NCBI GenBank assembly: GCA_050084985.1
Contig: JBITNC010000001.1
Location: 17,608,001-17,672,000 of the forward strand
Source of the DNA: Nageia nagi
Taxonomy: Eukaryota; Plantae; Pinophyta
Length of the DNA: 64,000 bases
Reading direction: 5' to 3'
Below, one piece after another: positions 14,172 to 63,544 of the stretch; the stretch's first letter is position 1; each line of letters starts with the position of its first letter. A model generated the notes under the pieces. The model had not been told where the DNA came from, searched no databases, and saw nothing but the letters and a program-made list of their open reading frames with translations. Made by a program: the position numbers and the translations under genes.

Positions 14172-16519
14172 TGCTAATGTCATTTTAAACCCATTGGTTT
14201 GTAGGACCTATCAAAGTTTATCCAGAAGTAAATATATATATCAATTAAACATATGAAATATGATTATTTCTCATATAAAGAAAAATATTGAACAATGCAC
14301 ATATATTCCAAGAAAAAAAAGAATACTCCCAAGGAAAATTGATGCAATCATTCTAAAACCAGATCAAACACAATATGCTGATGTTTTCTTAAACCTCCAA
14401 ATAATAAATACCAATAAACCTAAAATTCATGACAAACATCCCTAAAACATTTTGTAAAGTACCCCATAATTGTTTTTTTAATCATTTTACCAAAAATTGA
14501 ATGATATTAAAACTAGGAATGAATGCTTGACTCTCTTGCATAACTTGCAGTTGCATATAATGATCTTATGTTTATCATTGTTAATAAAAAGAACAATTAA
14601 GTAGTTATTGATGGTTTGGATCAAGTTGAAAGGCAAGATGATGCTTTTATTTCATGTCCAAACTCTCACTTCGACACTCATGCTCCTCTTTCAAACTTGA
14701 AGCAAGAAGCTTTTTATATTCAATTGCCTCTACCTTGGCCTTAGCAATCCATTTATTCTTGTCTACTATTCTTGCTCGCTTCTTTTACATTGTTAAAGGT
14801 GTTACAAGTCTCTAAATATTTGGAGCTTTATTTCACTTCTTAACTATCTTCAATTGAAAAAATTAAAACTATTAAATCTTCATTTGTTCTCGAATCCCAT
14901 ATCATAGTCGCTTTTAAGTGTCATAGAAATCTTTAAGGTATCAAAGGCCACACTTAATGCCATGAAAGATATGTGACTATAGAATTGATAGAGGATGCAC
15001 CAAGAAGTTGTGAGATCTCAGGAAGTAAATGAGACTTGCAAGTATAACAAACAATAGTAGGTGAAGTTGACCTTAGGGAGTTTCATTAGGCACCAATGAA
15101 TAGTAGGTGTGGTTGATCTTTATGTTAGAAATAATGCATTATATTAGAATATAGATATTTTAGGTATCTAGATAAATTAGATGTTGAATAATACATTAGT
15201 AAATAATACTAATGTTAATTTATTAGGTATTAAGATTTCTAGGGTGAAATAATTTCTCTACAAGAATCTCTTGCTCATGTATTTAAACTCATTTTAAAGT
15301 TAATACAACATTATGTGCTCTCATTTCCAATGTGGTATCAAAGTGGGTTCAATTTATATCTTCTCATAATTTGCCTCGAAAGTGATGGTTGATCTTAGCT
15401 AATCCATGACTAGGGGATGATTGTTGTCAAGAATAAGAAACTTGAAGATTTGAATAGTATAAGGCTACCAACAACCATTATGTCAAGAAATAGTCAAATA
15501 AAAGCTCGTTGATCCATAACTTGCTTGGTTGGATCAAAGAAAGAGTGTTGAAATGTATAATGCATTATTGTAAAGGTTTGTATTAATCCTCTTTGTAAGT
15601 TCACTAATACTTAAGAGTATCATTTGATACCTTAAGTATTTAAGTGAATATGATAATGTTATTGTTCCTCACTCCTCCATTACCGACGTCTCCCCTCCAT
15701 TGTCTCAGCTACTCCACTCCTCACAACTCTATGCACCTCATTGGGCTAATGGCATGCGACCTCCTGTGGCAGTAGACCGACACCTAATCCTTTGAGCCAT
15801 GGAGGCAAGACCTTGCAACCCCTCCTCTATGCAATTTTTGTAGGACCTCGTGGCCCCTTTGGCCTCATTGACCCCGCGACCTCTCCATTCATCACCTCTT
15901 CATGCCACTCCTTTGCGGCTCTCTCAATGCTGCCCCTTCACGGCTCCCTCAATGTCACCCCTCCGTGGCTCCCTTTGTCCACCTCCCGTTGGCCTTTGCT
16001 CCACCCCCCCTTCTTCATATGTCTCACATGAATCCTCCATCTGCACACCAACTCGCCCTCACTACCTCTTTCAAATTGCTTACCTTTTTTTCTTTAATTT
16101 CTTGCTCCATGTGATTTTTTTTTACCTATAGTGGTAGGTAGGCAATTAATTTTTTTTTTTGCCTACTTGCAAGTATCTTGGTTGCATATAGAAGACATTG
16201 TATACTCTTTCCTTTGGTAGATTTTTAATTTGCTTGCAAGACTTTTTTTATTAAATGCACTTAGATCTACTTATATTCCAACTTAGAAATCATTAAATGC
16301 ATTTAGATGCCTACAAGTCATTTAAAGCTTTTCATGATGAGTATACTTACATTACTTTTGACTTGGTCCAACATTCATCATTACTATTAAATGCACTTAT
16401 TCAAAATACTTTTAAGAATAAATTATTTAGTATGCTACCTTTAGGGATAAACCTTTAAGTAAAAAAGGGGGGGAATTTGTATAAATTTTCTACTTAAATT
16501 TTTATTTAGTCTGCATACT

Positions 16520-16990
16520 AAATGTTTAAGTTAAAAAGATGCATGCTTATGCTTAGTACTTAAATTTTTTACTTTAAGATGCATGCTTATGCTTAATACC
16601 AAATTTTTTACTTTAAGATGCATGCTTATGCTTAGTACTAAATTTTTTACTTTTAAGTTAAAAAGATGAATGCTTATGCTTAGTACTTAAATTTTAAGTT
16701 AAATGCATGCTTAATACTTATTTGTTAAGTTAATAAATGCATGCTTAGTACTTAATTTTTAAATCAATGATGCATGCTTAATACTTATTTGTTAAAGTTA
16801 ATAAATGCATGTTTAGTACTTAATTTTTTTAAGTTAATGTTGTATGCTTAGGATTTAAATTTTTAAATTAGTGTTGCATGCTTAGGACTTAATTCCTTAA
16901 GTTAAAAAGATGCATGTTGAGTATTTATCCTTTATGCAAAGTTAACTTATGCAAATTTTTGAAATTAATACATGCTTATGCTTAATTATC
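16520..16990 (+). repeat. Tandem array of ~35-45-bp units (gatgcatgcttatgcttagtacttaaa...) in B's leader; homologous array in C at ~23920-24200 (minus)
   Basis: About 11 degenerate copies visible. Confidence 0.85.
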
Positions 16991-17819
16991 TATCATTTTT
17001 TTTTGCAAAGTTTGATGTAAAGATGTCCTTTAGGGGGTTTGGTAAACAAAACCCATTGGACACTCAAGTTTCAAATTTTTGCATGGATGATGTTTTACTT
17101 ATGCTCTTTTACTTCATGTTTCATATTTTGATTTATTTGCTTATGCAAACAAAAATGAAACCATTGATATCAACAACATTTTAAAATAAATATATTCGCA
17201 TGTACATTTCGCAACATGACTTGTTTGGAAAGCCATGAGGTGAGGACAGATGGACTAGAGCCTTTAAGTTCAACGATCTAAATGGTGAAAAGTTCATACT
17301 TCTCAATTACCTCTAAGTCTTCTATTGGTCTGGATATAACTCCAATAGGTAGATAAACATATGTGTACTGATACCACATATTCGCACATCCATTTAGGGA
17401 TTATCTTGATAACCTAGGAGGATAATTTAAAACTTAATCAAGATTAATAATTTGATCAATCCAATAAATGTCATAACCTTAAAAAATAGTATGTACTTCT
17501 CATTATGAGAGTATAAAACTGATCAAAGCAAACTTGTTAAGGATTAGTAGTACTTGGGCTCCTCTTGTGTGGGTATATAGGTAAAAGCTTAATTATAGAT
17601 AAGAAAATAAACTTCAACAATATCACTCTACATCTACGGTACTTGACATTAGAAATGTCTTTGAGTACATGGATTATTTGAGTTGTATAATATTTGCACT
17701 TGTAAATCAAATCATGCATGTCTTTTGTGTTAAAATTAATATGTATTTTTTACTTGGTTAAAACTTAACATATAATGTTGTTAACCACATGCTTATTATT
17801 TCACATTCTTGTGTAGCAA

Positions 17820-18158
17820 ATGGGAGACTCCTTTTTACCCAAACATATTCTTGATGGTTTCAATTTTAGAATTTGAGAACCATAGATGAAAGTTGAATTA
17901 CAGGCAAAGAAGCTTTGACAAATAATGAATAAGAACCTTGTACCTCCTATAGATGAGAAGACACTAGAGGTTTATAACACGAAAAATGAGTTGGCAATCT
18001 CCATGATCTACCATGCAATTTCAGATGATGTGCTCATGATGATTTCTTCTTCAACCTCAACAAAGGAAGCTTAGGATAAACTTAAGCAAATCTACCTTAT
18101 TTTAAATTTTTCAAGAAGGTTTACCATTCTCTAAAAGTTATTTCAATCTCATCAAGGG
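17820..18158 (+). pseudogene. Element B gag, N-terminal part
   Basis: MGDSFLPKHILDGFNFRI*EP*MKVELQAKKL*...TKEA*DKLK; reading continues across the C insertion as QSHQG|EDEKMA. Confidence 0.88.
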
Positions 18159-19456
18159 TGAAAGAATTGAACTATAATAAAAATAATCATAAACTACCAA
18201 GATCACATGAAAGCTCTCAAATTACATCCAACAAATATACAAAGCAATCTCACAACACAAGATGTAAAGTGGTTCCTCCAACTAGAAGTATATCCACTAA
18301 CTAGATCTTTACTTCTCTTATAAATACAACTCTCTTACAATCCTTCTAATCTCAACTCGTACACTTCTATCATATAGCATAACCTTACTTCATAATTGAT
18401 ATGTCATTACAAAGAGGGAGCCTTCTATTTATAGACCAAAATCCCTCCTTGGATGACCTAAACATGATATGCATATATTTGACCCAAGAGGCATGCTCAT
18501 GACTTGAAGTTTAAGATAAGTTACATTATTATATTCACTAAAATACTTAAGGTATCAAATAATACTCTTAAGTATTAGTGAATTTACATAGAAGATTTAA
18601 TACAACCTTTACAATAATGCATTATACATTCCAACATTCCTTTTTTATGCAATATTGGAATAGAGCAAGTAAGAGAAAAGAAGAAGAGAAAGTAAAAGAG
18701 TTCTCCTCCAAACAGATACAATGAAGATGAGAACTTTTTACATATTTGTGAAGTAAAAAAGATCTAATTTGAGATTCACTACTTTTTTAAATACAATCAT
18801 TAACCACAACTGGTTTCAATGTACATGAAGTAGTCATCTAACTAGAAGTCATGAAGAGTCTTCAAAAGCTTGCATACCTAAGGTAAGTAATTTGCAATCT
18901 TAGAGAAACCTGCAAGTCATTAGCAGCTCAAATAACAAGATTAGTTAGATGCATCATATTCATATCAACAAGGATAGATGAATCACACAAATGCCATCAT
19001 AAACTGATCAATGATAAAGCATATAAAGATGTCAAGAAATCATAAATGCACAACAACAAAGATGACATAAATCATCAACTATGATATCTAAGAATATCAC
19101 ATGTGCATATATCAAGATGTGCAATATTAACCAATTGATATGCATCAAAAATGATACTTGCATTTGTCTTTGTTGTTTATCATTCTATCTTGTGTATGTA
19201 TTTATTTTATATGAGGGGTGTCATCAAAATAATACAACTAACCGGATAGTTTCTCCCCTTGGATGACCGCTTCATCAAACAAATACATAGAGGATAAGAA
19301 TCATGCCAAGAATAAAGGCCAAAGTGACTAATATGGACATTAAGATTTAAAGGCAAAACAAATATCAGAAGGCACAAAATGCTAGCTTAAGGACCACATG
19401 AAGATGTAGAAAGCCATAAGGTGCCATTTAGAAATGTGATTGTACCAAGAGTAACT

Positions 19457-19676
19457 AAGATGGCACACAAAATACACTTGACTTTACCAAGAGGGAGTCA
19501 AGAAGGCATAATAAATAAGCTTGATTTGACCAAAAGAGGGTCAAGATGTCACAACAAATAAATTGGATTTTACCAAGAGTGAGTCAAGATGGCATAATAA
19601 ATAAACTTGATTTTATCAAGAGGAAGTCAAGATGCCACAACAAATAAACTTGACTTGAACAAGAGTGAGCCAAGAT
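19457..19676. repeat. 43-bp tandem repeat x5
   Basis: Units of the form aagatggcataataaataaacttgattttaccaagagtgagtc. Confidence 0.9.
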
Positions 19677-19844
19677 TGGAGAATTAGAAGTCCATCTTAA
19701 CCATGCTACCAGTTAAGAGTGAAATGATGAAATTGGTAGCATGAATAAATTGAAATAATTCAAATTTCATCAACAATATGTAAATAATCTATCATCATAG
19801 ATCAATCTTCCATCATCAGAGAAGGAGAAAAGAGTGTGGCCATT

Positions 19845-20030
19845 AGTGCATTATAAGTCATCACAAAAATGCCAAGCTAATACTTATAGTCACCAAAAGA
19901 TACTTGGATTTATATTGCACTATAAGTCATCATAGAGGATGCCAATCCAATACTTATAGTCAATGAAAAAGACATGGATTATGGTGCACTATAAGTCATT
20001 ATAGAGGATGCCAAGCCAATACTTATAATC
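19845..20030. repeat. 69-bp tandem repeat, about x2.7
   Basis: tgcactataagtcatcatagaggatgccaa.. recurring near 19847, 19916 and 19985. Confidence 0.9.
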
Positions 20031-20077
20031 ACTTGCTGTATATAAAACATGTGTTGATTATCATTAGAAAAAGAGCA

Positions 20078-20365
20078 TGCACATATGCGTTCCTTACATA
20101 TGGATAACATAAGAGTTTCTCATATATGAATAACTGAATAGTGCTAGAAGGACCAAAAAAAGAGTATGCACATAAGAGTCCCTCACATATGGATAACTGA
20201 ATAGTGCCAAAAGACACATAAGAGTTCTTCACATATGGATAACTGAACAGTGCAAGAGAGGCCAAAAAATAGAGTATGCACATATGAGTTCCTCACATAT
20301 AGATAACTGAATAATGCCAAAAGACACATAATAGTTCCTTACATATGGATAATTGAATAGTGCAA
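20078..20365. repeat. Tandem array with alternating long and short units (core gagttcctcacatatggataactgaatagtgc)
   Basis: Six core copies; B has two copies at 30350-30440. Confidence 0.9.
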
Positions 20366-20699
20366 GATAGACCAAGTTGTACAAGTTCCTCATGTAGAGT
20401 GAACTTACCATGAAGGTGTACGACAAAATCAATACTATACAACACATAATCAGTGAAAGATGCATGTAACAAAGCCATCGAGAAAAAAGACTTAGTTTTA
20501 GTAATGTAACATAATCCATCAAAAATGGATCCACCTTCTCAACATGGAAGTAAAACATAAAATGTAGATGAATAGAGTTGCAGTTGTTTCATCAAGAACT
20601 TGCTTTTAGAAATAAAAGACTTGGATTTGTGAAAGTCTACATACATATTACAATAGCAAATAAAAAATGCAATAAGAATTCAACCAATACTTCCCTTGA

Positions 20700-21218
20700 A
20701 AGGATATTTCACCAATCCTACTTCAGAAAGAGGGCTTGGTGAATAAAGGATACGTGGGTTTGGTGTAGGAATGTCCATTCCATACCAGAGTGGCTGATTG
20801 CTATGATTGAGATTGTGGGTCAACTTCGATAGGACCCACAAAAGGTTTAGATGCAATTTTCTTTAGAATGGGAATACCAAAGTGTTGAAGGATATCCTTA
20901 TACTGGAAGGCCCTTTTCTTCCACTTTTTTTGTAATCATTGCATTTCACAATGGCTATTGCTTACATCGTGCCTTTGTATCTCATTCATTTTTGCTTATA
21001 ATTGCCATATTTTTCTCAGCTAGTAGTTTATCGTGTTCAACCAAAATTGCATGGTAATACTATATACATATAGCTTTCTCTTATTGTAGCATATCATAAT
21101 GATGGGCCATTATCTCCATCTTGACCTTTATGGTAGCCAGTTCATGGCGAAGGTAGACATTTTCTAAATTTGCTCATATATTTATTTCTGTGTCAGAATT
21201 CAAGGAAGAACTTCCCAT
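20700..21218 (-). pseudogene. Element C cargo ORF3, coiled-coil-like protein of unknown function
   Basis: MGSSSLNSDTEINI*ANLENVYLRHELATIKVKMEIMAHHYDMLQ*EKAICI*YYHAILVEHDKLLAEKNMAIISKNE*DTKARCKQ*PL*NAMITKKVEEKGLP; stops revertible by C>T; 3' end uncertain. Confidence 0.55.
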
Positions 21219-21480
21219 GTGTGCAATAAAATTCTTTGTGAAAGTCATGATCAACCTATCGCTCATGATTAAAATATCCAATTTAATAGTCAAAAAGAGA
21301 GAAAAATAGCACAATGATGACTTAGTCATTACGCAACTTAGTGGTACTATCATTATTACTATCTTGACATGTATGACATTAATAAATTAAATGAGGAGTA
21401 GGTGAGATATTTTATCATCGTAAATCTTTTTCTCTAGTTGTCATAATTATTATAGTTTGATTATATCAAATCATATGCAT

Positions 21481-21489
21481 TATAAATAG
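21481..21489 (+). promoter_or_regulatory. Candidate TATA box for cargo ORF1
   Basis: tataaatag about 70 nt upstream of ATG 21552. Confidence 0.45.
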
Positions 21490-21551
21490 CCATAAATGAC
21501 CCTCGTTTGTCATTCGATGCTCTGCATTTATGATTTGAGCTATTATCTATC

Positions 21552-22118
21552 ATGGATGTGTCTCAGTTTCATACCCTACCAAGCGATCTCTAGGATAACA
21601 TAATGCATTGCAGTGTTCATGCAGCTTTAGAAAATTATGCTTTGATCGCATCTGAGGTTTTATTGCAACAACGACTAGTATTTTTGCAATTATACCTAGA
21701 CAATTATTGTGGTATTTGCATGATTTTTCATCTCAATCATGAGGATCATGTTCATTGATTATTTCATTTGCTCAGTCGACCTGATTGGACATGGTGTATA
21801 ATTATTTATACCTTGTTTAATCGTTATCTTTTGCAATTTGTATGCTACATCGGACTGCCTTCCTTTCATCCATAGAAGTATTTCGAACCACTCATTATTG
21901 CATGGGTAGTTCGTTAGCATAGGCTTCAATGGTCATCCACATACTCTTTTCGCGTTGCTTGACGAGGTGGACATCGTATTTTACGTCATCATTTTTCTTT
22001 TTCTTATCACTTTTTATTTTTTTTACATCAATATCTTTTAGAATTAGACACATTCAATTTTAGCATATCTGAAGATGATGCTAATTCTTCGAATTTTGAT
22101 GACCATTTACTAGACTAG
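21552..22118 (+). pseudogene. Element C cargo ORF1 (189 codons, F-box-like N-terminus, unknown family)
   Basis: MDVSQFHTLPSDL*DNIMH...QQRLVFLQ...ICMIFHL...RPDWTWCIIIY...YIGLPSFHP*KYFEPLIIAWVVR*HRLQWSSTY...NFSISEDDANSSNFDDHLLD*; no frameshift needed, 5 transition-type stops; paralog of ORF2. Confidence 0.8.
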
Positions 22119-22368
22119 CATTAATCAAGCCATAAGCACCACCCACTTGGGCTTATTAGTGGAAATCTTTTCTAACATTTTAATAAAGTAAAAGATAAGG
22201 TCACATTGGTTATTATGCTTGTATGGTTGATCCATTTTGATATTCCCATTTATGATCGATGATCTAGTTAATTTGTAATTCTATAAATTCATTGGATTCT
22301 AGTTGATCACCATCATTTTCACTTATATATGAAATCTTCAAAGAGATCTAACTCACTTGTCATTCATC

Positions 22369-22933
22369 ATGGATATGACCATTTTCTAAGGTCTTCGTGC
22401 TGATCTTCTTTAAGAAGTTTTTTATCGATGTATTCAAGGTCGAATCTTACAACATGCTTACATTATGCTGCAGATTGCTATGCAACAAAACCTAGTTCGC
22501 ATATAAGGTGATCAAAGTCTCTATCGATAGGCCATCTGCTTTATCCATCATTTAGAGGATACCGAGCAGTTGCACCTTATACTCACACTTGTTTATCGTC
22601 CAAACTAGACATGGAAGATCATCTTTTATTATTCGTAGATACCTTTTGTCTTCTATTATTTGCATTATGAAGGTCCTACAATGTTGCATCCTCATAAGTA
22701 CTATCACCCCTATACTATTGCATTTACAATATGACGACGAGATCTTCATTGGGAGTCCACTTATATTTCATGACTAATGTGAGAAGGGAATCAATGGGTA
22801 TACTACCTATTTTTCGACATCAGGTGTCATTTTTTTCTGATCACTTATGATATGTTATTCCATATACCTAATTTTTTCTATCATAGATCTTGAGAGTTCT
22901 AACTCTAACTCTCTCGATCATGATTCTACTTAG
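22369..22933 (+). pseudogene. Element C cargo ORF2 (~188 codons, paralog of ORF1)
   Basis: MDMTIF*GLRADLL*EVFY...QQNLVRI*...ICFIHHL...RPN*TWKIIFY...YEGPTMLHPHKYYHPYTIAFTI*RRDLHWESTY...FSIIDLESSNSNSLDHDST*; 9 transition-type stops and one 1-nt frameshift in the 3' part. Confidence 0.8.
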
Positions 22934-25785
22934 TTTGGTTATCCACTTGGGTATGTGAATGGAACTTTTCAAAAGTACTAAATATTATTTTTGTTCTATC
23001 TTGTATTAAATTGTTTATTGGATAAATTTTCAAGTTCTCAAGATAAATCTCAAATACAATAATTTTAATTGAAAGATATCGTAAATAATGATGCACATAA
23101 AACATAATAATGCTAGTGCATAAAATATTTCAAAATATAGTGTACAAAATACTTAATTTTGAAATATACATATTTTTTAAAGATAAGTGAACCCTCATGC
23201 TTGTAGAACAAATCACCATAGCATAACATATGTGAGATAAAAAGAACACCATTAGATATAGAGTGACATGGTTGAAGATTCTTGTCTTGTTTAAAAATTA
23301 GGCTTTCACTTGGATGCCCACACAAGAAGAACCCAAGTACTACCAATCTTCAACTAGTTTCTCTTGGGTAGCAATATACTCTCACAAAGAGAAGTACTAG
23401 CTATTTTTTAAGATTTTGACGTTTATTAGATCGATCAAATTATTAATTTTGATTTGTTTCAAGTTGTTCTCCTAAGTTATCAGGATAATCCTTGAATGGA
23501 TATGCGGATATGTGGTATCACTACACACATATCTATCCATCTATTGGAGTTAAATCCAGACCAATAGAGGATTTAGGGGTAATTAAGCTATACAAACTTT
23601 TCACCACTTGGATCGTCAAGCTTAAAGGCTCTAGTTCGCTACTCCTCATTGCATGGCTTCCCAAACAAATCATGTTATGGAATGTACGTGTAGATATATT
23701 CATTTTAGGGGGTTACTCATATTAATGTTTGCGTTTTTGTTTGCATAAGTAAATAAATCAAAATGCGAAACATAAAAAAACATAAGTAAAACATCATCCA
23801 TTCAATAACTCAAAACCTAAGTGTTCAATGGGTTTTGTTTACTAACCCTTAAAAGATATCTTTACATCAATTTTTATTTTGCACAAGTACATTAACTTTG
23901 CATAAGAGTATACATTAATCCATAAGTATGCATCATTAACTTAAAGAAGTATGCATCAATCTAGAAATTAAGCATGAATTATTTCTTCATAAGAACTAGA
24001 ATTTAAGAGGCATAATCATGCATTTTTAAATCATAAGCATGCATCTTCAAAAATTTTAAGTCATATGCATGAATCTTCAAAAAAATTTAAGTCCTAAGCA
24101 TGCATTTTTAACTTAAAAATATTTAACTTAAATTCTAAGTCCTTGAGCTTTTATCATCAAAAATTAAATTCTAAGAAAATATTAGGCATGCATAAACTTT
24201 TAAGTAAAATACTCATAAGCTTGTCCCCCCGTTTTACTTTAAAAACAAGATCCCGTAAAAACAAGAAGAAAAAATATATATATTCGATCACTAGAATAAT
24301 GACTAGCAAAAAAGAAGGAATAGTGCAAACAGAGCCATCCATAAAGGCAGGCCATTAAGGAAGTCATTTGGTGTGGGAATTAATATAGTGCACCATAATT
24401 CGTCATAGTTGCATTGCCAAGTAGCATAGTTTCGTGTGGGATTGAGATATATTCAACGTATATGATATTATAACTGTTAAATCAATTTCAACAAGAACAA
24501 TAACAAGAATTGAATATCATGGTGGACTTGGTGATGAAGAGCCACGTTTTCCAGGGGATGACATCTACGCAAGGACATGTATGATCCACCCAAGTCAAAG
24601 AGAGGAGGCTAAAGAATTTATCAAAAACCTACCATAGGCAAGAAGGTTGCCAAAGTGGAGTAGAGGGGAGTTGGTGGCAAAAGACAAAAAAACAAATACG
24701 CATGGCATGCGTGCTGGTCCCTGGTCTTCGATAACTTGAGGTGTATGACATTAATGAAATGATGCATGGCAGGAGCATGGGGAATGGTCTACGAGGGAGG
24801 AAAGGCTAACGCCAAGGTGGTTGAGACCATAAGTATGAGGGCCAGGCGAGGAGAATCATGGAAGCATAGTGCTTTATGCCATACAACTCTTACATTGGTT
24901 GGTATTCCCTTGACCAGGACTTCGTTATGTGTAGTAGTAGTTGCACCCTGTGCCATGAAAGCCAAGTCATTTGGATAGGATGGTGACATCAAACGAGGAC
25001 ATAGATTGGTTCATTTGGTCATGGAGACGTCGCTCGCTCTGGCCGAGGAAGGATCTGCAGAAGTAAATTCAGCAACCTCCACTTGTGGTGTTTAGGAAGG
25101 TAAAAGTACCGACCCTGCAATCGACTTCCACTAGGGTTAGTATTCTAGAAGCATCTTTAGTTGTGGAAGCTTCTATAGAGTTCGAGGTGACCAGCTTATT
25201 TGATTCGTTTGGTAACAGGGTGAGTTTGTGTAAGGGGAAGAAGAGACATTGGAGGATAGGGAAATGGATCAATGTCAGAGGAGGATGAGTAAGAATAGGG
25301 AATCTACCACCTACCCCTATGAGCTAAAATAGGAATATGGAGAGAGGGCCTATCTGAGATGCCATCATGGAACTACTCTGACTAGATAGTGCCTGGTCGT
25401 GTGGAGGATGAAGGTGCATATAGAGAGAAGGAAAGAGAGTGCTTGGTCGTGCCAATACTTTCTAGTAGCCGTCATATAGAATTTATAAAAATTAAAAAAC
25501 TATTTTATAAATTTTTATAGATGTAAACCCTCGCTTCCTCATTTGCAAAAAGTCTTATTTGTCATAATAATCAACTCAATATGGTTTTGAAGGAAAAAAA
25601 TGGAGTATATATATTTTACTCAACTCAACTGTATATAATAGCACTTAAAACAAAGGTAGGCAAAATATAGTAATATAATAGGTAATTTTAAGATTACTAT
25701 TTTTTACTAACAATAAGACATTATAGTGAAAAAAAATAATGTAACAAAATATATTGCTATAAAATATTTGCATGTAAATTTGAAA

Positions 25786-25787
<2 letters not shown>

Positions 25788-25851
<64 letters not shown>
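25788..25851. repeat. (AT)32 microsatellite in C's leader
   Basis: Read directly from the sequence. Confidence 0.98.
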
Positions 25852-25854
<3 letters not shown>

Positions 25855-26603
25855 CTCAACTTTTGATAATAAAAAACTTTCACTATTAATGAAATATATG
25901 CAAAAATTATAGCAATATGATTGAAAACTAAAATAATACATGTTAGTATGCAACAAAAATATATTGCTATGTTAAGTAAATCAAGATAAAGAGAAGTAAG
26001 ATTATACTTTGAATCACTTTTACTTATCAATGGAGTGAAGGATAAAGAATGAGGACCTCCAAGATGAAGATGTAAAGCTTCAACTCCAAGGATGTGAAGA
26101 GTGGCTTTCAAGTTCCTTTGATACCAAATGAAAGAATTAAACTGTAATAAGAATAATCTTAAACTACCAAGATCACATGAAAGCTCTCAAATTACATCCA
26201 ACAAATACACAAAGCAATTTCACAACACAAGATGTAAAGTAGTTCCTCCACTTAAGAGTACATCCACTAACTAAATCTTTACTTTTCTCACAAATACAAC
26301 TCTCTTACAATTCTGCTAATCTCAACTCCTACACTTCTATCCTATAGCATAACCTTACTCCACAATTGGTGTGTAATTACAAAAGAGCTTTCTATTTATA
26401 GGCCAAAATCCCTTCTTGGATGACCTAAGCATGACATGCATATCTTTGACCCAAAGGGTATGCTCATGACTTGGAGTGTAAGATAAGTTGCATTATTATA
26501 TTCACTAAAATACTTAAGGTATCAAATAATACCCTTAAGTAGTAGTGAATTTACATAGAAGATTTAATACAACCTTTACAATAATGCATTATACATTCCA
26601 ACA

Positions 26604-29600
26604 AAGGAGAAGATGAAAAAATGGCTATCTATTTAAACAAAATCATTGACCTAAGGATCTAACTTATTGCTTGTGGGTGCAATTGGATCAATGATGAGTT
26701 CATAATTTTCATTATTCTTCAAAACCTTTTTTCAAAGTTTGAAAACTTTGTGACGATTATGGAAACAAGGCTTGATGATAAAAAAGAAGTCTTCTTTCTT
26801 AAGAACCTTTCTAGGCACCTATTAAAGCATGAGGAAACCCTTAACAATAAGGTGTTGATTTCTTCTCCTAAGGATAATAATATTGCTCTTGAAGCAACCA
26901 AAACTCCTTTCAAAGAGTTCAACCATCAAAAGAAATCTTACCTTTCTTCCTCTAAAAGATTTGAGAAAAGAGGTAATGGCTACAATAGCAGTAGAAATAA
27001 CAAAAATAATAACTACAACAGTAGGAACAACAGCAACAACAACCACTTCAAGCAAAGAGATAGAAAAGGTAAAGCAAACAATCCATATCCTAAGAAAAAG
27101 TTTGATGGTATTTGTAATTATTATGGCATCCAAGGTTACAAAGAAGTTAATTGCTACAAAAAAAAGAGAAGAAAAGAACAAATATAATAGAAATGTAAAG
27201 AATTTCAAAAGAAATAAAAATATTTATGTTGGTTTTGCTGCAGCGCTCTACTCCATGTCTCATATTTTTTTATCTGATTGGATTGTTGATTCTGATTGCA
27301 TTAATCACCTATGCTTTGAAAAGGAAAATTTTGAAAACTTTCACAAGTATAGAAAAGATACGATTATGATAGATGATAACTTTATTTTTGAAGTCCAAGG
27401 AATTAGGAGTGTGTTGATTCACAGAAAGGTTCTTGAAAATGTTCTCTATGTTCCTAAATTAAGGATGAACCTTCTCTCTATAATCCAAATTGCTAGAAAA
27501 AGGTACTCTTTTGAGTTCAACTCAATCCTGGTGCATTAAGAAAAGACTTGCCACTTTGGTTAAAGGATCTATGAAAGATAACCTCTACATTATGGATCAA
27601 GTTCCATCAAAGATGTGTCTTGCTTCTAGTGTGTGTTCTAGAGGTAATCTTTGTCACCATCGTTTAGGGCACCTTAACCAAAAGAGTATTTAAGTCATGA
27701 AAGACTAAGAACTTGTGAAAGGTTTACCTTCAATTTCTCCTTCGATTGGTTTATGTGAGAAGTGCATTCTTGGCAAGATGTATAGATAAAAATTTAAAAA
27801 AGATCAGACAACAAGAGCATCTCAACCTCTTCAACTTGTGCATTCAGATTTGATGGGTCCGTTTCAAACTAAGTCGCTTGGAGGAGCATCTTATGTCTTG
27901 ACCTTCATTGATGACTTTAGTAGGATGACCTTTGGGTATCTACTTGAGCACAAGGATCAAACCTTTGAGAGTTTTAAGATTTTTAAGGCCTTTGTTGAGA
28001 ATCAAACTAACCTTAAAATCGAGATGTTGAGATCAGATAATGGGAAAGAATATAACAGTAATGAGTTCAATGACTATTGTGCTAAGTATAGAATCAAGAG
28101 GTAGTTTACGATTCCTTACTCCTCAGCAGAGTGGTGTTACCGAAAAGAAAAATAGAATAATTATGGAGATAACTAGATGCATGTTGCGTAGTCTTCTTAG
28201 TTTCTTGTAGGGTGAAGTTGTGAGCACTGCTATTTACACCGTGAATAGGTGTCCTACAAAAATCGTTTAAAGTAAAACTTCTTTTGAAGCTTGGTTAAGA
28301 AGAAAACTTAACATTTCTCACCTTAAGATGTTTGGTTGTGAAGTACTCTCCCACGTTATTTTTGAGAAAAAGAAGAAGTTGAACAAAAGAGTTGAAAAAT
28401 GCATTTTTGTGAGATATGACAATCAACATAAAAGTTACAAGCTCTACTATCCATTTTACAAATCCATGTTTGTTTTAAGGGATGTAAAATTCAATGAACT
28501 TCCTAAAGAATCTGCTTCTAATGAGGATGTTGATGACCCAGAGGACTTTTTAGTTGCTCCTAGTTGGTTAGATATTGATATAGATAAGTAACCTCAAGAA
28601 CAAAATTCTCCAACACAAAAGGTAATAAGGAGCATGACCTTGAATAAATCCTTATTTGCCAAGATTGACAATAAGCATAAGCCCTCATCCTTCAAAGAAG
28701 CTTCAAAGCACGAGTGTTGGATAGAAGCCATGAAAGTGGAGTATGAGGTGCTTATGAAAAATAAAACTTAGGATTTGGTTCCTTATCCCAATGAAAAGAA
28801 TGTGATTGGTAATAAATGGATCTACAAGGTCAAGTTCAATTCAATTGGAGATATTGAAAAATACAAGGCAAAGTAGCTAAAGGTTTTGCTCAAAAATACG
28901 ATGCAGATTATGAAGAAACTTTTGTTTCTATGGTAAATATGTTTACTGTAAAGATTATCTTTGCTCTTTTTACAGTTCAAAAATGGAAAGTGTTTCAACT
29001 TGATGTCACGAATGCATTTTTCATTGGTGACTTAGATGTGAAAATTTTCATGAATCAACCATAAGGGTTCATTGTGAAAGGAAAAGAGTACTTTGTGTGC
29101 AAACTAAAGAAGTCATTATATGTATTTAAGCAAGCACCTAGAGCCTAGTACAGGAAGATTTCAGGGTATTTTGCAAACATTGATTTCTTCAAGTATTTTT
29201 CAAACTTTGATCTATATGTACTTAATAAAAAAAAATATGATTTTGATTCTCCTTTATGTGAATGATCTTCTAATAACTGAGAATAATGATGAAATCATTC
29301 AAGATTGCATATCCAAACTTAAAGCAACGTTTGAAATGATTGATCTTGGTCTCTTACATTACTATCTTGAAATGCAAGTGTATCAATACAAAGATTGTAC
29401 TTATCTCAATCAATCTAAATATATATCAAACATCTTGCAGAAGTTTGGAATGGAAGAATGTAGATATGCTATGATTTGTCTCCTGAAATTACTATTTCTC
29501 TGAGCTCCAACTCTTAATTAGCTGATGCTACAGCTTACAGGCAATTAATTGGTAGTCTTTTGTATTTGACTATAACCAAACCAAATATTATCTTTGCAGT

Positions 29601-30190
29601 GAATCAGATGGTACTATTCATGCAGAAATCATATGTTGAGCATCTCAATGTTGTTAAGCAAATTTTGAGGTATGTTGTAGGGATTAAGGATGTTGCTCTC
29701 AAGTATTCTAAGTTGCCTTTATTTGTTCTCTCTTGATTCTTAGATTTTGACTATGGGGGAGATAGAGATGATAGGAAATCAACATTTGTGTATGTGTTTA
29801 GCATTGGTTCAGGTGCTATCTCTTGGGCTTCCAAGAAGCAACCTACTATTTCTCTTTCCATCGTAGAAGCTGAATACTGTGCCATGTCTAGTGTAGCTTA
29901 GGAAGCCATTTGGCTAAGTTATCTTCTGACAAAATTGGGTATGAGCAAGGTGGTTCATTTTGATTTCATCAGATAATCAATCGGTTATTTCTTTGGTTAA
30001 GAATCCTGTGTTCCATTAAAGAACAAAACATGTGAAAATCCATACCCATTTTATCAAAGAGAAGGTTCTTGATGGCATAATACACTTGGAGTATTGTCCA
30101 TCCACCTTGAACTCCATTGATTTGTTCACTAAACCCCTCCCAAAAGCTTAGTTCTATAAGCTTAGGGATGCTATCGAGTTAGTGAAGTTG
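26604..30190 (+). pseudogene. Element B gag-pol remainder: gag, zinc knuckle, protease, integrase, RT, RNaseH
   Basis: CNYYGIQGYKEVNC; WIVDSDCINH; LCHHRLGHLN; HSDLMGP..FIDDFSR..LRSDNGKEY; DYEETF; LYVNDL; ISWASKKQ; DLFTKP, in Copia domain order. Confidence 0.95.
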
Positions 30191-31439
30191 CCCTCAAGGG
30201 AGAGTGAAGTTTGAATTCTTATGTTGAATTCATGTTTGTGATGACTTCACCCTTAAAAGGATTTTGTGTTGTATAATGTTGTACACCTTCATGGTAAGTT
30301 CATTCTGTATGAAAAATTTGTATAAAATTTTAAAAGCAAAAGATTGGCCAATCTAGCACTGTTCAGTTATCCATGTGTGAGAAATTCTTGTGTCTTTTAA
30401 GACTATTTAGTTATCCATATGTGAAAAACTCATATGTGCATGCTCTATTTTATAATGATAATCAACACATGTTTTATATACAATAGGTGATTATGAGTTT
30501 TTGGCATAACATCTTTGTGATGACTTATAGTGCACCATTGATCAGTTCATGATGGCATTTGTGTGATTCATCTATTTTTGTTGAGATGAATATGTTGCAT
30601 CTAACTGATCTTATTATTTGAGCTTCTTAAGACTTGTAGGTTTTTTTGAGATTGCAAGTTACTTACCTCAGGTATGCAGGCTCTTGGAGACTCTTCATGA
30701 CTTCCAGTTGGATGACTGTTTCATGTATATTGAAACTAGTTATGGTTAATGATTGTATTTGGTAAAGTAGCGAGTCTCAAACTAGATCTTTCTTAATTCA
30801 CAAATATGTAAAAAGTTCTCTCCATTGTATTTGTTTGGAGAACTCTCTTACTTTCTCTCTTCTCTTTTATTTGCTCTATCCCAATATTGCATTAAAGGAG
30901 AGTATTGGGATGCATAATGCATTATTGTAAAGGTTTGTATTAATCCTCTTTGTAAGTTCACTAATACTTAAAGGTATCATTTGATACGTTAAGTATTTAA
31001 ATGAATATGATAATGTTACTTGTCCTACACTCCATGTCATGAGCATGCCCCTTGGGTAAAAGGATGTGCATGTCACGTTTTTGTACATTAGATAAAAGGG
31101 TGATCCAAAAAAGGATTTTGACCTATAAATAGAAGACTCCCTCTTTGTGATCACACATCAATTTGTGGAGTAAAGTTGTGTTAGAGGATAGTGTTTAGGA
31201 GTTGAGATTAGGAGGATTGTAAGAGTTCATATTTGTTAAGAAGAGAGATCTAGTTAGTGGATGTACTCCTAGTTGGAGGAACCACTTACATCTTGTATTA
31301 TCTTTGTGAGTTTTTTAGATGTGCATTGTGAGATTTCATGTGATCTTAGGAGTTTAGAGTTGTTCATGTTATAGTTCAATTCTCTCAAAGAGAACTAAGA
31401 TGAGATAGATTTATTTGATCTATCCCTCCTTCTAACCCT

Positions 31440-33130
31440 TGATGAGACCGATGATTCTTCAAGTAGCCCACCTGCAACATCACATGAACCTGATAGTGGT
31501 CCCATTATTAATCATGATGATGTGAGAGAAGTTCTAGTTCTAAACATAACAACTGATAACTTCAAAAGAAGGAAATGTTACCAAAAGACACTATAGGATT
31601 CACAGTTGAGTGCTCCACCAAACACTTTCACATCTAGACCAAGGACACGAAGCATGGCTTATGAGGAAGTGATCTTGGAATTGATGAACACATTGGTAAA
31701 TACATTTGAAATTGAAACAGTTTGTGAAGCCCTTCAATAAACTCATTGGAAATCAGCCATGTAGGCTAAGTAAGATGCATTGATGAAAAATGGAACATGG
31801 AAGTTGGTAGAACTTCCACTTGGTAAGAAGGCCATTGGATGCAAATGGTTGTTTAAAAAAGGTATAAGGCTGATGGAACACTCAAGAATCATAAAGTTTG
31901 ACTAGTTGCCAATGCATATGCACAAGAAGAAGGGGTATCGATTATGAGGAGACATTTACTCCCATAGCCAAGATGAAGACCATCAGAATTGCCTTTGCAA
32001 TGGTTGCACAATTTGGTTCGAAAGTCCACCAAATGATGTGAAGAGCGCCTTCCTGAACAAAGATTAAGGAAGAAGTCTACATGCAACAACTTGAAGAGTT
32101 TGTGATTGACCAAGGCAAAGGAAAAGTGTGTAGATTGATCCTAACTTGTATCTTTGATAACATGGGGGGGGGGGGGAATTAACATCAGGGAGGGGGAGAT
32201 TTTCATTTTTGTAATAAATGTTGATCTAGTATTCAAAGGCAATATTGAAGAGTAAATCAAATCTTGCAAAGATGACCTCAAATATCATTCAACATGACCA
32301 ACCTCGATTTACTTCACAATTGACTTCTATTGGAGGTTTGGTAGATGCATGATTAGATATTTGTTTCACAAATGAAATACACCAAGAGTTTGTTAGATAA
32401 ATTCAAGATGACAAAGTGCCAACAAATGTTGATGCCAATTGAACCTAGTTTAGATTTGTCATGCCATGATAGTTCTTCATCTATAAATGCAACTATTTGC
32501 AATTAGCTAATTGGAGGGTTAATTTACCTTACATATACCATACCAGATATTTGCTAAGCTATTAGCTATCTTTCACGATTTATGCATGAACCAAAGAAAA
32601 CCCATTAGACCATGACAAAACATGTTATGAGATACATATGTGGAATTGACAGTTATGGCTTGGAGTATAAGAACAATAAGTTCATCTTGACTAGATACAC
32701 AAATGTAGATTATGGAGGATCCTTAGATGATAGGAGATCGATGATAGGATATGAGTTTTTCCTTGGATCTAGATTGATTTCATGGGTTAGCAAGAAGAAA
32801 AGCATCACATCAAAATCTATCATAGATTTGGAATACCATGCCATAGTTGATGCTATTTGTGAAGTAGTATGGTTATGTCGTATTTTGATAAACATTGAAA
32901 TTCCAAAAAAGTAACCTACAATTTTGCACTTTGATAATCAAAGTGTATTGAAGATGGTTCGTAATTCTATTTTCCACGAATGCTTCAAATACATGGAGAT
33001 ACATATGCACTTCATTCGTGACCATGTTTCATTATAAAATATTTAGCTCCACTACATTTCCATGAAAGAGCATATTGCAAATGTCTACACCAAATCTCTC
33101 GACAATGGAAAGTTTGAATACTTTTGAAGC
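31440..33130 (+). pseudogene. Element A RT-RNaseH remnant
   Basis: TWKLVELPLGKKAIGCKWLF; DYGGSLDDRRSMIGYEFFLGSRLISWVSKKK; ANVYTKSL. Confidence 0.9.
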
Positions 33131-61363: not shown

Positions 61364-63544
61364 TTAATACTGTACCCAAACTGTCTCAAACACTTGTGTG
61401 TCAAAACCCCATATTGTTTCTTTGTTACCAAGCCCATTTTGAATGCATAACAAGGCTGATTTTCTGATAACAGCATTAAAATCATGGTGTTTGTACTCCC
61501 AAAACGTAGCCAAACTGAGTGATTCTCCATCCCTTATAGTTGTACTATGCATGAGTATCAACCAACCAACAATAATACTGATTGGGGTTTTGAGAAAGAG
61601 GCTGCAATGTAAGAGTAACAAGTCTAATTTTCTCTTTCCAATAGTCATAAATGACTCACAATCATCTACACTCATGCTTTCATTGTTTCCCATCAATGTG
61701 CCATGCATAAATGAAGTGTAGCTATAAATCATACCAAGAAAATAGAGACTGAAAATTGTATGTACAGCAGTATTATCATAGCCATACATCCATTTTACTT
61801 CCTCCCATATGACTTCTAAACCAAGCCAAACATTAAGAACTTCATTAGGAATGTTTTTCTTTACAACACTCAATAGACATGCCCTTTCCAATGGCCCTTC
61901 ATGCTGTTGTAGTAACCTTGAATTGAATGTGCATACCATGGATGAATATGTCTTCATAATTTCATGTTCACTCTCAAGACAAATATGACTATGTGCTCCC
62001 ACAATCGAGAATACACCTTTAAAACCAGCCAATGCAAAAAGTGTATAACTCAAATTCATGGCAAAATGTAAGTAAGTTACCTTCCCAAATGTGTGGAGGT
62101 TGGCATCACCGCAAGACACCAATTTCTGAAACTTACCAAGTTTCCTATCAACAAGCTCATCCAAATCATGCCTAAAAAGAAATAGTGCGCTGCTGTCATA
62201 AAAATCAGAATTCAACTTGTACCTGTTTAGAATGTTTCTGTGGATTCTCAAGTTCAAATTTATCTTCTTTTTCCTTCTATAACTGATTGAGGCACCTTTA
62301 CATATGAAATTTTCTGATCTTACTTTTCCTAAGTTGATAAAATGAACACATATGCAATTTTTCAACTCATGCGTAGCAGTCTCAAATCTTATTGCATCAA
62401 ATATCATGCAATGTACAGCCATATTCATGTGAATTGCAGCCAAGCCATTTGTCATCAGAACAGTCCAAAACGTCTTGCAAAGTGGAGTACAAAACATGAA
62501 GGAAGATGTACTAATGTTTTGACAACAAGTATATATAAAACTTGTCTTTGTGCATGCCCAAAGAAACACACAAATCAAATCAGTTTCCTGTGTAACTTCT
62601 GCAATCTCAAAACTGTATGCCATCTTATGCATGTCAATAATCAAATACCAACTTGAAATCCTCCAATGTAGTGTGCTCCAAATCAAACCTGAATTGAAGA
62701 TGTACAAGGGCTCCAAAGCGTGCTCAAGAGTTTTCACAAATGCTATGAACTGTATAAAAGTAGAAAAAATGCAGTCAAGACTGCCTAAGTGCTTCTTCAA
62801 GACCCATGAAGTTTTCAAAGTATCTTCCAACTCCAACAATCTAAAAATGAAATGATTAGTTTCCCATCTATAACTGTTACACATTCTCAAAATGAAATCA
62901 AAAATCATCAAGGAAAAATTATGAACCAATGTATGCCAAGGTTCAACAAGAAGTGCAACCCATTCATCCCATTTGTCTTTCAAACCATGTTCCAAGTATG
63001 TGCAAGTGTCCCAATAAAGTGTGGAATCAGTCTCCTTTTTGCTATTCCAAAACTTCATCAACAAGACAACTATAATCCCTTGAATTCTTTCAATTATGAT
63101 ACTTTTTTGCTGGCTATCCCAATTGTCTAAATAGCTGAGAATGTCATGTGGAATTGTGAGGTGACAAGTGTACCAATTGTCCACATTTCCTACTGTAATT
63201 TTTCTGATTTCTTTATCAGATTCATAGGTTGCCATCAAGTGAGAATTTTGTGCAATTCTTTCCACATATAAGGCTCCAAAAAACAACTCCAAATACGAAA
63301 ACAGAATCAACAATGTGTATACCAATGAAAGCCATAAAAAGAGATGGAAAGATACCACATATGACCATGAAAAAGTATCTTTCTCTGTAATGTTCCATGT
63401 CGGGAGTGCTCTACACATTCTATCATGCATCCACATGAGAAAAATCAGCATTTTATTTGAAGGAACCATGGCTGTAGTAAATTTACCTTCACATGAAATA
63501 TCAAAGAGTTGTCCTCCTCCCATGTACTTGTATGAAACTTCCAA
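61364..63544 (-). CDS. Element G 726-codon ORF of unknown function, probably once fused to the protease
   Basis: Uninterrupted 2181-bp frame; no YxDD, RNaseH, HHCC or DDE motifs recognised; hydrophobic segments; starts at TTG just after the protease end (QGIR|ENTSKVACKILEV, one frameshift). Confidence 0.7.
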   Translation of the reverse strand: MEVSYKYMGGGQLFDISCEGKFTTAMVPSNKMLIFLMWMHDRMCRALPTWNITEKDTFSWSYVVSFHLFLWLSLVYTLLILFSYLELFFGALYVERIAQNSHLMATYESDKEIRKITVGNVDNWYTCHLTIPHDILSYLDNWDSQQKSIIIERIQGIIVVLLMKFWNSKKETDSTLYWDTCTYLEHGLKDKWDEWVALLVEPWHTLVHNFSLMIFDFILRMCNSYRWETNHFIFRLLELEDTLKTSWVLKKHLGSLDCIFSTFIQFIAFVKTLEHALEPLYIFNSGLIWSTLHWRISSWYLIIDMHKMAYSFEIAEVTQETDLICVFLWACTKTSFIYTCCQNISTSSFMFCTPLCKTFWTVLMTNGLAAIHMNMAVHCMIFDAIRFETATHELKNCICVHFINLGKVRSENFICKGASISYRRKKKINLNLRIHRNILNRYKLNSDFYDSSALFLFRHDLDELVDRKLGKFQKLVSCGDANLHTFGKVTYLHFAMNLSYTLFALAGFKGVFSIVGAHSHICLESEHEIMKTYSSMVCTFNSRLLQQHEGPLERACLLSVVKKNIPNEVLNVWLGLEVIWEEVKWMYGYDNTAVHTIFSLYFLGMIYSYTSFMHGTLMGNNESMSVDDCESFMTIGKRKLDLLLLHCSLFLKTPISIIVGWLILMHSTTIRDGESLSLATFWEYKHHDFNAVIRKSALLCIQNGLGNKETIWGFDTQVFETVWVQY

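Follow-up and report, generated by a model that had tools for sequence, protein, structure and literature searches.

Decayed antisense paralogous genes in a gag-pol-less Ty1/copia-type retrotransposon of Nageia nagi

Introduction

What kind of genes are two reading frames that are interrupted by stop codons and lie antisense in the interior of a long terminal repeat (LTR) retrotransposon devoid of gag and pol? This question is raised by a stretch of 64,000 nucleotides of the conifer Nageia nagi (assembly GCA_050084985.1, contig JBITNC010000001.1, positions 17,608,001 to 17,672,000 of the forward strand), which is called the window below; all positions refer to it unless a metagenome contig is named. 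A previous reading of this DNA from its letters alone, the sequence-only reading, had described two tandem open reading frames (ORFs), ORF1 and ORF2, at the place of gag-pol in an LTR element, element C. It had proposed that they were paralogous genes held under long purifying selection, with F-box-like N termini and possibly an anti-silencing function.

The answer given here, to which we assign a probability of about 0.75, is that ORF1 and ORF2 descend from an ancient duplication within an orphan family and are the decayed remains of intronless genes, which were an integral antisense part of a non-autonomous Ty1/copia-type lineage and most likely encoded accessory factors. At this locus, both genes are dead relics. 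The F-box assignment was not supported.

Results

ORF1 and ORF2 are deep paralogs

The coordinates and frames of both ORFs were as claimed. ORF1 occupies positions 21552 to 22118 on the plus strand with 189 codons, the terminal stop codon at 22116-22118 included, and is interrupted by stops at codons 14, 69, 108, 122, and 137 without any frameshift. ORF2, at positions 22369 to 22933 on the same strand, is the more decayed of the two, with stops at codons 7, 15, 46, 54, 80, 90, 122, 135, and 138 and more of them in the tail. Both products had been said to end in a Ser/Asp-rich tail. These tails are present, but the one of ORF2 requires a frameshift near 22870-22885, which lies just ahead of it.

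With the stops entered as X, the alignment of the two proteins was colinear and contained one gap of a single residue. A score of 208 was obtained in local alignment with BLOSUM62, compared to 36.3 ± 6.0 with a maximum of 66 in 500 shuffles, so that the similarity seen by the sequence-only reading was significant against shuffled controls. In tblastn comparisons, E values ranged from 1e-13 to 5e-15 at 27 to 28% identity over 169 to 176 residues, and no third copy of the family was found within the window by this method. When all 36 frame pairs were aligned, the claimed pair reached a score of 221, followed by 91 and 70 for the next best pairs. The codon alignment of ORF1 and ORF2 contained 308 differences at 561 sites, which is a DNA identity of about 45%. 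A frame-specific signal at such a low DNA identity indicates paralogy at the protein level and not a recent duplication of the DNA.

A sister element carries the same pair

Searches for relatives were run with stop-free pieces and not with frames read through stops. A phmmer search with codons 15 to 68 of ORF1 (54 residues) against 1.84 billion representative sequences returned one true relative, P0001, a protein of 61 amino acids with 58% identity and an E value of 2e-11; the other four matches covered only a short Cys/His-rich string, which was matched repeatedly. P0001 comes from JGI/ENA metagenomes and forms a cluster of its own. A homolog search with P0001 as the query found P0001 itself only, with a length window that is blind to full-length relatives of short pieces. 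A metagenome scan recovered the two contigs of P0001, L001 and L002, which are identical over an overlap of 1,958 bp and represent a sister of element C (metagenome contigs Ga0139313_100808 and Ga0181472_104633). The viral contigs, searched with one family alignment (A2), yielded no relative.

The sister element is colinear with element C over the LTR, the region on the side of the polypurine tract, the tandem repeats, a third ORF region (ORF3), and the counterparts of both genes, ORF1′ (L002:1247-1810) and ORF2′ (L002:2076-2558). DNA identity between the two elements was about 72% in the ORFs and 60 to 64% around them. At the protein level, ORF1 and ORF1′ were 54% identical without gaps and ORF2 and ORF2′ 57% identical with one 3-nucleotide (nt) gap in the DNA, whereas the cross pairs reached only 27 to 28%. 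This low cross-pair identity indicates that the duplication leading to ORF1 and ORF2 occurred long before the two element lineages split. The pair is thus present in the same order in both lineages compared (n = 2) and not confined to one captured copy. All the shared motifs that had been listed for the two proteins were found again in the four-way alignment. L001 additionally contains, in the sister element's flank, a Lys/Glu-rich open frame of 187 residues at positions 1037 to 1600.

Both genes were under coding constraint

The differences between the copies of the two elements were distributed over codon positions 1, 2, and 3 as 64, 57, and 86 in case of ORF1 and ORF1′ and as 41, 36, and 59 in case of ORF2 and ORF2′. 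The Nei-Gojobori ratio of nonsynonymous to synonymous substitution rates (dN/dS) in the claimed frame was 0.33 for the ORF1 pair and 0.29 for the ORF2 pair, compared to 0.47 to 1.07 in the five other frames. In a combined bootstrap of both ORFs, dN/dS was 0.31 (0.22 to 0.42) versus 0.74 (0.59 to 0.93) off-frame. Insertions and deletions (indels) between element C and its sister told the same story: none in 534 nt of ORF1, a single 3-nt gap in 480 nt of ORF2, and 24 in 1,355 nt of the flanks. The rate of the flanks would predict about 18 indels for the ORFs, with a Poisson probability of about 3e-7 for the observed number. The low in-frame dN/dS together with the exclusion of indels indicates that both genes encoded proteins and were selected during most of the divergence between the two elements. 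The proposal of purifying selection on a real, retroelement-borne protein family was therefore upheld.

Evaluation of this result needs to consider several points that speak against it. None of the four copies is intact, and each carries at least four stops (5 in ORF1, 4 in ORF1′, 9 in ORF2, and 4 in ORF2′ in the compared parts). Stops occur in the same alignment column of different copies, namely, in columns 14, 123, and 138, which, as the main caveat, could mean that both genes had died before the two element lineages diverged. The sister element is known from metagenome contigs alone, and the Nei-Gojobori dN/dS is biased when transitions dominate, a bias that the off-frame controls answer in part.

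We read the stops in shared columns as probable recurrent transitions at conserved codons, because the substitution spectrum of the LTRs (see below) is dominated by transitions. If the stops had been inherited instead, the low dN/dS and the missing indels would be hard to explain. Constraint was also observed past the stop column common to ORF1 and ORF1′, with a dN/dS of 0.37 (0.16 to 0.73) in codons 123 to 178. Except for the tail of ORF2, all four copies were damaged by stops alone. Compared to a random frame of the same composition, ORF1 contained 5 stops with 11.1 expected and ORF2 9 stops with 9.6 expected. It had also been argued that every internal stop is one transition away from a codon for Gln, Arg, or Trp. 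This is true, but the genetic code makes it so for all three stop codons, and it does not count as evidence.

Element C is a non-autonomous Ty1/copia-type retrotransposon

The window is AT-rich eukaryotic DNA with a GC content of 0.25 to 0.47, crowded with the debris of LTR retrotransposons, and pieces of copia gag, Pol_BBD, RVT_2, and RVT_1 were identified in it. Element C is bounded by direct repeats at 18159-18636 (3′ LTR) and 26129-26603 (5′ LTR), both in minus-strand orientation; read on this strand, the 3′ LTR starts with TGTTGG and ends with TTTCA. The LTRs start with TG, end with CA, and are 91% identical. They are flanked by a target-site duplication, AAGGG at 18154-18158 on the left with its partner AAGGA at 26604-26608, of which four of the five bases match.

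The polypurine tract, AAAAAAGGAA in minus-strand reading, was read in the sequence at 18637-18646 directly upstream of the 3′ LTR, and the primer binding site, TGGTATCAAAGG in the same reading, at 26115-26126, two bases past the 5′ LTR. Ten of the 12 bases of the primer binding site agreed with the consensus of the initiator-Met tRNA type, the usual one in Ty1/copia elements. The positions of the primer binding site and the polypurine tract place element C on the minus strand, so that ORF1 and ORF2 on the plus strand are antisense to it, as had been claimed. With TG...CA LTRs, a 5-bp target duplication, a primer binding site, and a polypurine tract, element C belongs to the non-autonomous LTR retrotransposons of the Ty1/copia type.

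The divergence of the LTR pair, a Kimura two-parameter distance of 0.09, comprised 31 transitions and 9 transversions. Polarized with the LTR of a second element of the window, element B, the changes in element C were mostly C>T and G>A. This copy of element C is old and methylation-worn.

The internal region of element C has a size of 7.5 kb. ORF1 and ORF2 are located upstream of tandem arrays, at a distance of 2.9 to 4.3 kb from the 3′ LTR, in an element that has no pol. These arrays occupy positions 19457 to 20368 in the 3′ internal region, with 43-bp units at 19457-19714 and units of about 110 bp at 20068-20368, and are in part common with element B at 30277-30501. A leader-like region follows at 23253-24132 (minus strand), of which element B contains an inverted copy of about 80% identity at 16525-17636. 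The 5′ internal region contains an (AT)n microsatellite at 25762-25863, and the approximately 2 kb of element C around it (24133 to 26128) is without a counterpart in element B.

No match was found between the interior of element C and the copia gag, Pol_BBD, and reverse-transcriptase ORFs of the window itself. Ten stop-free pieces of element C gave no Pfam family, a tblastx comparison of positions 20426 to 23252 with the rest of the window gave no match, and neither did an Rfam scan of positions 15000 to 32000. An alternative interpretation of the repeats 17012-17636 and 23253-23870 as long terminal inverted repeats of a Mutator-like element was rejected: this pair interleaves with the LTR pair, and the inverted repeat is explained as the leader common to elements B and C. 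Elsewhere in the window, an open frame of 726 residues is located at 61364-63544 on the minus strand, with no Pfam family at an E value of ≤0.01.

A third relic is located next to the pair. ORF3, at 20600 to 21400 on the minus strand and therefore in the sense of the element, is divergent from ORF1, contains stops and a frameshift, and would encode a Lys/Glu-rich, coiled-coil-like protein. The sister element has conserved it as well, with minus/minus as the best frame pair and a score of 243 against L001. Its stop-free pieces had no Pfam match.

Element B resembles a helper of element C

Element C inserted into element B, a copia element on the plus strand that spans positions 15546 to 31387, the start being approximate. 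In element B, Pol_BBD is located at 26883-27539, RVT_2 at 29120-29503, and the 3′ LTR at 30905-31387. Both elements have a common LTR (79 to 88% identity), a common leader (16525 to 17636 in element B versus 24132 to 23253 in element C, 80% identity), and a common repeat-bearing 3′ region, and the unique ORF-bearing stretch of element C occupies the slot of gag-pol in element B. The position of the pair at the gag-pol slot, as had been described, agrees with this comparison. Judged by these similarities, element B is the related autonomous partner of the gag-pol-less element C. The 5′ LTR of element B continues for about 125 bp and is then broken by a GC-rich block (15670 to 16020), which is unlike the surrounding region.

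Motifs around the ORFs and a possible mode of expression

A TATA-like motif at 21481-21489 (plus strand) precedes the ATG of ORF1 by about 63 nt, and TATAAGTAG is its version in the sister element. Two such motifs precede ORF2 within 22283-22331 of the plus strand, TATAAAT at 22283 and TATATAT at 22325, and the former corresponds to TATAAGT in the sister element. The TATA-like motifs described upstream of each ORF were thus recovered, with those at 21481 and 22283 conserved between both elements.

Downstream of ORF1, 21 nt past its end, a DNA motif of the form CCACTTGGG ... TGGAA ... CTTTTC is located at 22143-22175 (plus strand). By sequence comparison, a second copy follows ORF2 at 22943-22975 (plus strand), and the sister element contains the motif at about 1835-1868 of L002; it is kept in all copies. 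The exact core occurs in the window at 22143 and 22943 only. The motif is situated 20 to 25 nt beyond the ends of the ORFs, and its conservation between the paralogous units exceeds that of the coding DNA. At 22143-22175, it is in the same frame as ORF1 and in a different frame in the other copies. Since the reading frame varies among the copies, the motif is probably non-coding, such as a 3′-end or regulatory signal.

An antisense gene is not translatable from the genomic RNA of its element, so that transcription of ORF1 and ORF2 must start inside the element. With a TATA-like motif 60 to 85 nt upstream of the ATG and the conserved 3′ motif, each unit may have been an RNA polymerase II gene of its own. 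Being without gag or pol, element C has to rely on helper proteins, such as those of element B. Given this dependence, the pair can have been selected only through how well the element lineage fared. Accessory factors that would favor the expression, packaging, or survival of this parasite of a parasite are the most likely products, as judged by analogy with the role proposed for the extra antisense ORFs of Grande, RIRE2, and Retand.

Discussion

Alternative explanations and the F-box question

ORF1 and ORF2 may be derived from a captured (transduced) host gene that was duplicated after its capture and traveled as passive cargo without any role for the element. Plant LTR elements are known to capture gene fragments (PMC7264820), and the two ORFs are intronless with promoter-like motifs of their own. 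The search of the 1.84 billion representatives with the best piece, however, gave only the sister fragment and no relative of a host type, and there was also no match in Pfam, the PDB sequences, or the ESM Atlas. Moreover, the pair is colinear in two lineages that are 28% apart, with frames kept at a dN/dS of about 0.3, which passive cargo would not be. This origin is unlikely.

A second alternative would be that ORF1 and ORF2 encoded F-box-like adaptors, which recruited SKP1 to degrade a silencing factor, by analogy with the polerovirus protein P0 or with VANC. It agrees with a Leu-Pro-x-Asp-Leu string near the N terminus of ORF1, and a host-directed function of some kind would fit the selection seen on a transposon-borne gene. 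The N terminus of ORF2′ is the only uninterrupted one among the four copies, but neither these 60 residues (L002:2076-2255) nor 11 other stop-free pieces matched the F-box family PF00646 in hmmscan at an E value of ≤10. The Leu-Pro core was not conserved in the four-way alignment, with LP in ORF1 and LS, LR, or LC in the other three copies. A profile search of the PDB sequences gave 0 matches, and the ESM Atlas offered generic helical look-alikes at chance-level scores and no lead to an F-box. Instead of the three helices of an F-box, AlphaFold2 modeled the 60-residue N-terminal fragment as one helix of residues 2 to 47, with a predicted local distance difference test (pLDDT) value of 71 from a 5-row alignment, which carries little weight for a fragment. 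The short string in ORF1 is all that likens the pair to F-box proteins or to viral P0, and this alternative is very improbable. An F-box with an anti-silencing function, the proposal of the sequence-only reading that did not hold up, is unsupported and not disproved; for the anti-silencing idea itself, there is evidence neither for nor against.

The other features of the proteins gave no assignment to a known family. They comprise about 190 residues with a variable C-terminal third that ends in the acidic Ser/Asp tail. The model of the conserved, aromatic-rich middle fragment contained helices at a low confidence (pLDDT 64), and the proteins look mostly helical and are rich in His and aromatic residues and poor in Lys. 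Over the four copies, His was found 57 times with 38 expected from the composition at the codon positions and Lys 4 times with 21 expected; the poverty in Lys comes partly from the T-rich strand, as the off-frames are also poor in Lys. In Pfam, 12 ORF pieces and 10 other pieces of the element had only chance-level matches, to TIL_2 and DUF5826. A zinc-binding reverse-transcriptase domain (zf-RVT), considered for a Cys-x2-Cys ... His string, was rejected, with no Pfam match and the last Cys missing in all copies. Likewise, a transmembrane protein was rejected, as the hydropathy exceeded 1.3 in just one 19-residue window of one copy.

That there never was a gene but only a diverged tandem DNA duplication, with the frame as a by-product of the T-rich strand, would agree with as many stops in ORF2 as in a random frame and with the Phe/Leu/Tyr/His-rich, Lys-poor translations that a T-rich plus strand yields on its own, yet it is largely refuted and highly improbable, given one strong alignment among 36 frame pairs at 45% DNA identity, the excess of third-position differences, the lowest dN/dS in exactly the claimed frame, and indels that are common in the flanks and excluded from the ORFs.

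Relation to other antisense genes of plant retrotransposons

Decayed genes of an element-borne orphan family, the interpretation preferred here, can be compared with similar cases in other plants. Plant LTR retrotransposons are known to carry additional antisense ORFs in the stretch from pol to the 3′ LTR, for instance, gene23 of Grande, RIRE2, Retand, and PvRetro13; these ORFs resemble nothing in the databases and lack a known function, and some are nuclear-localized or possess promoters of their own (PMC7264820). Retand carries antisense ORFs, mostly with a TRP28 domain (Transposase_28, PF04195), plus tandem arrays near the 3′ LTR (PMC11963269).

The pair of element C resembles the ORFs of maize Grande (gene23), rice RIRE2, Silene Retand, and Phaseolus PvRetro13 in being antisense to the direction from primer binding site to polypurine tract, in its location in the 3′ half of the element, in its upstream promoter-like motifs, in lacking a resemblance to known proteins, and in its conservation among diverged copies of the lineage. 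As in Retand, the antisense ORFs are placed beside family-specific arrays just inside the 3′ LTR (19457 to 20368 in element C). The four elements are autonomous Ty3/gypsy elements (Tat/Retand) with gag-pol, whereas element C is a gag-pol-less derivative of the Ty1/copia type. Its cargo of tandem, deep paralogs (27% identity) plus a sense ORF is also unlike theirs, with gene23 and the ORF of RIRE2 compared by description only. In contrast to the TRP28 proteins of Retand, no ORF piece matched PF04195 at an E value of ≤10, and the primer binding site and the helper of element C are copia-type. On these features, the pair seems to belong with the additional antisense ORFs known from LTR retrotransposons of plants, from which it differs by its copia-type, gag-pol-less carrier, its two deep paralogs, and the missing TRP28 domain.

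Helper-dependent, non-autonomous LTR elements of the LARD/TRIM type or such as BARE2-like elements are usually described as non-coding. Element C is similar to them in missing gag-pol and in having LTRs, a primer binding site, a leader, and a 3′ region akin to those of the autonomous element B, and differs from them in that selection maintained two or three genes that belong to its lineage itself.

Antisense extra genes of plant retrotransposons have been known for more than 25 years and, to our knowledge, none of them has an assigned function. Most of the described cases concern autonomous gypsy elements. Clear coding constraint in a helper-dependent element argues that the genes of the pair serve the element itself. 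A bolder interpretation, which we regard as doubtful, would be that a gag-pol-less, copia-derived lineage has long maintained the antisense orphan pair together with the sense coiled-coil gene as dedicated factors, for instance, for hijacking the particles of the helper or blunting host silencing, which would add a new class to the proteins that transposable elements encode.

For this locus itself, the result is more modest, with two dead genes and an F-box idea that is unsupported. As the family is small, duplicated, and intronless, cloning it from a natural copy that is intact would be easy, and if the genome contains copies with open frames, the family would offer practical access to the function of antisense genes in plant retrotransposons.

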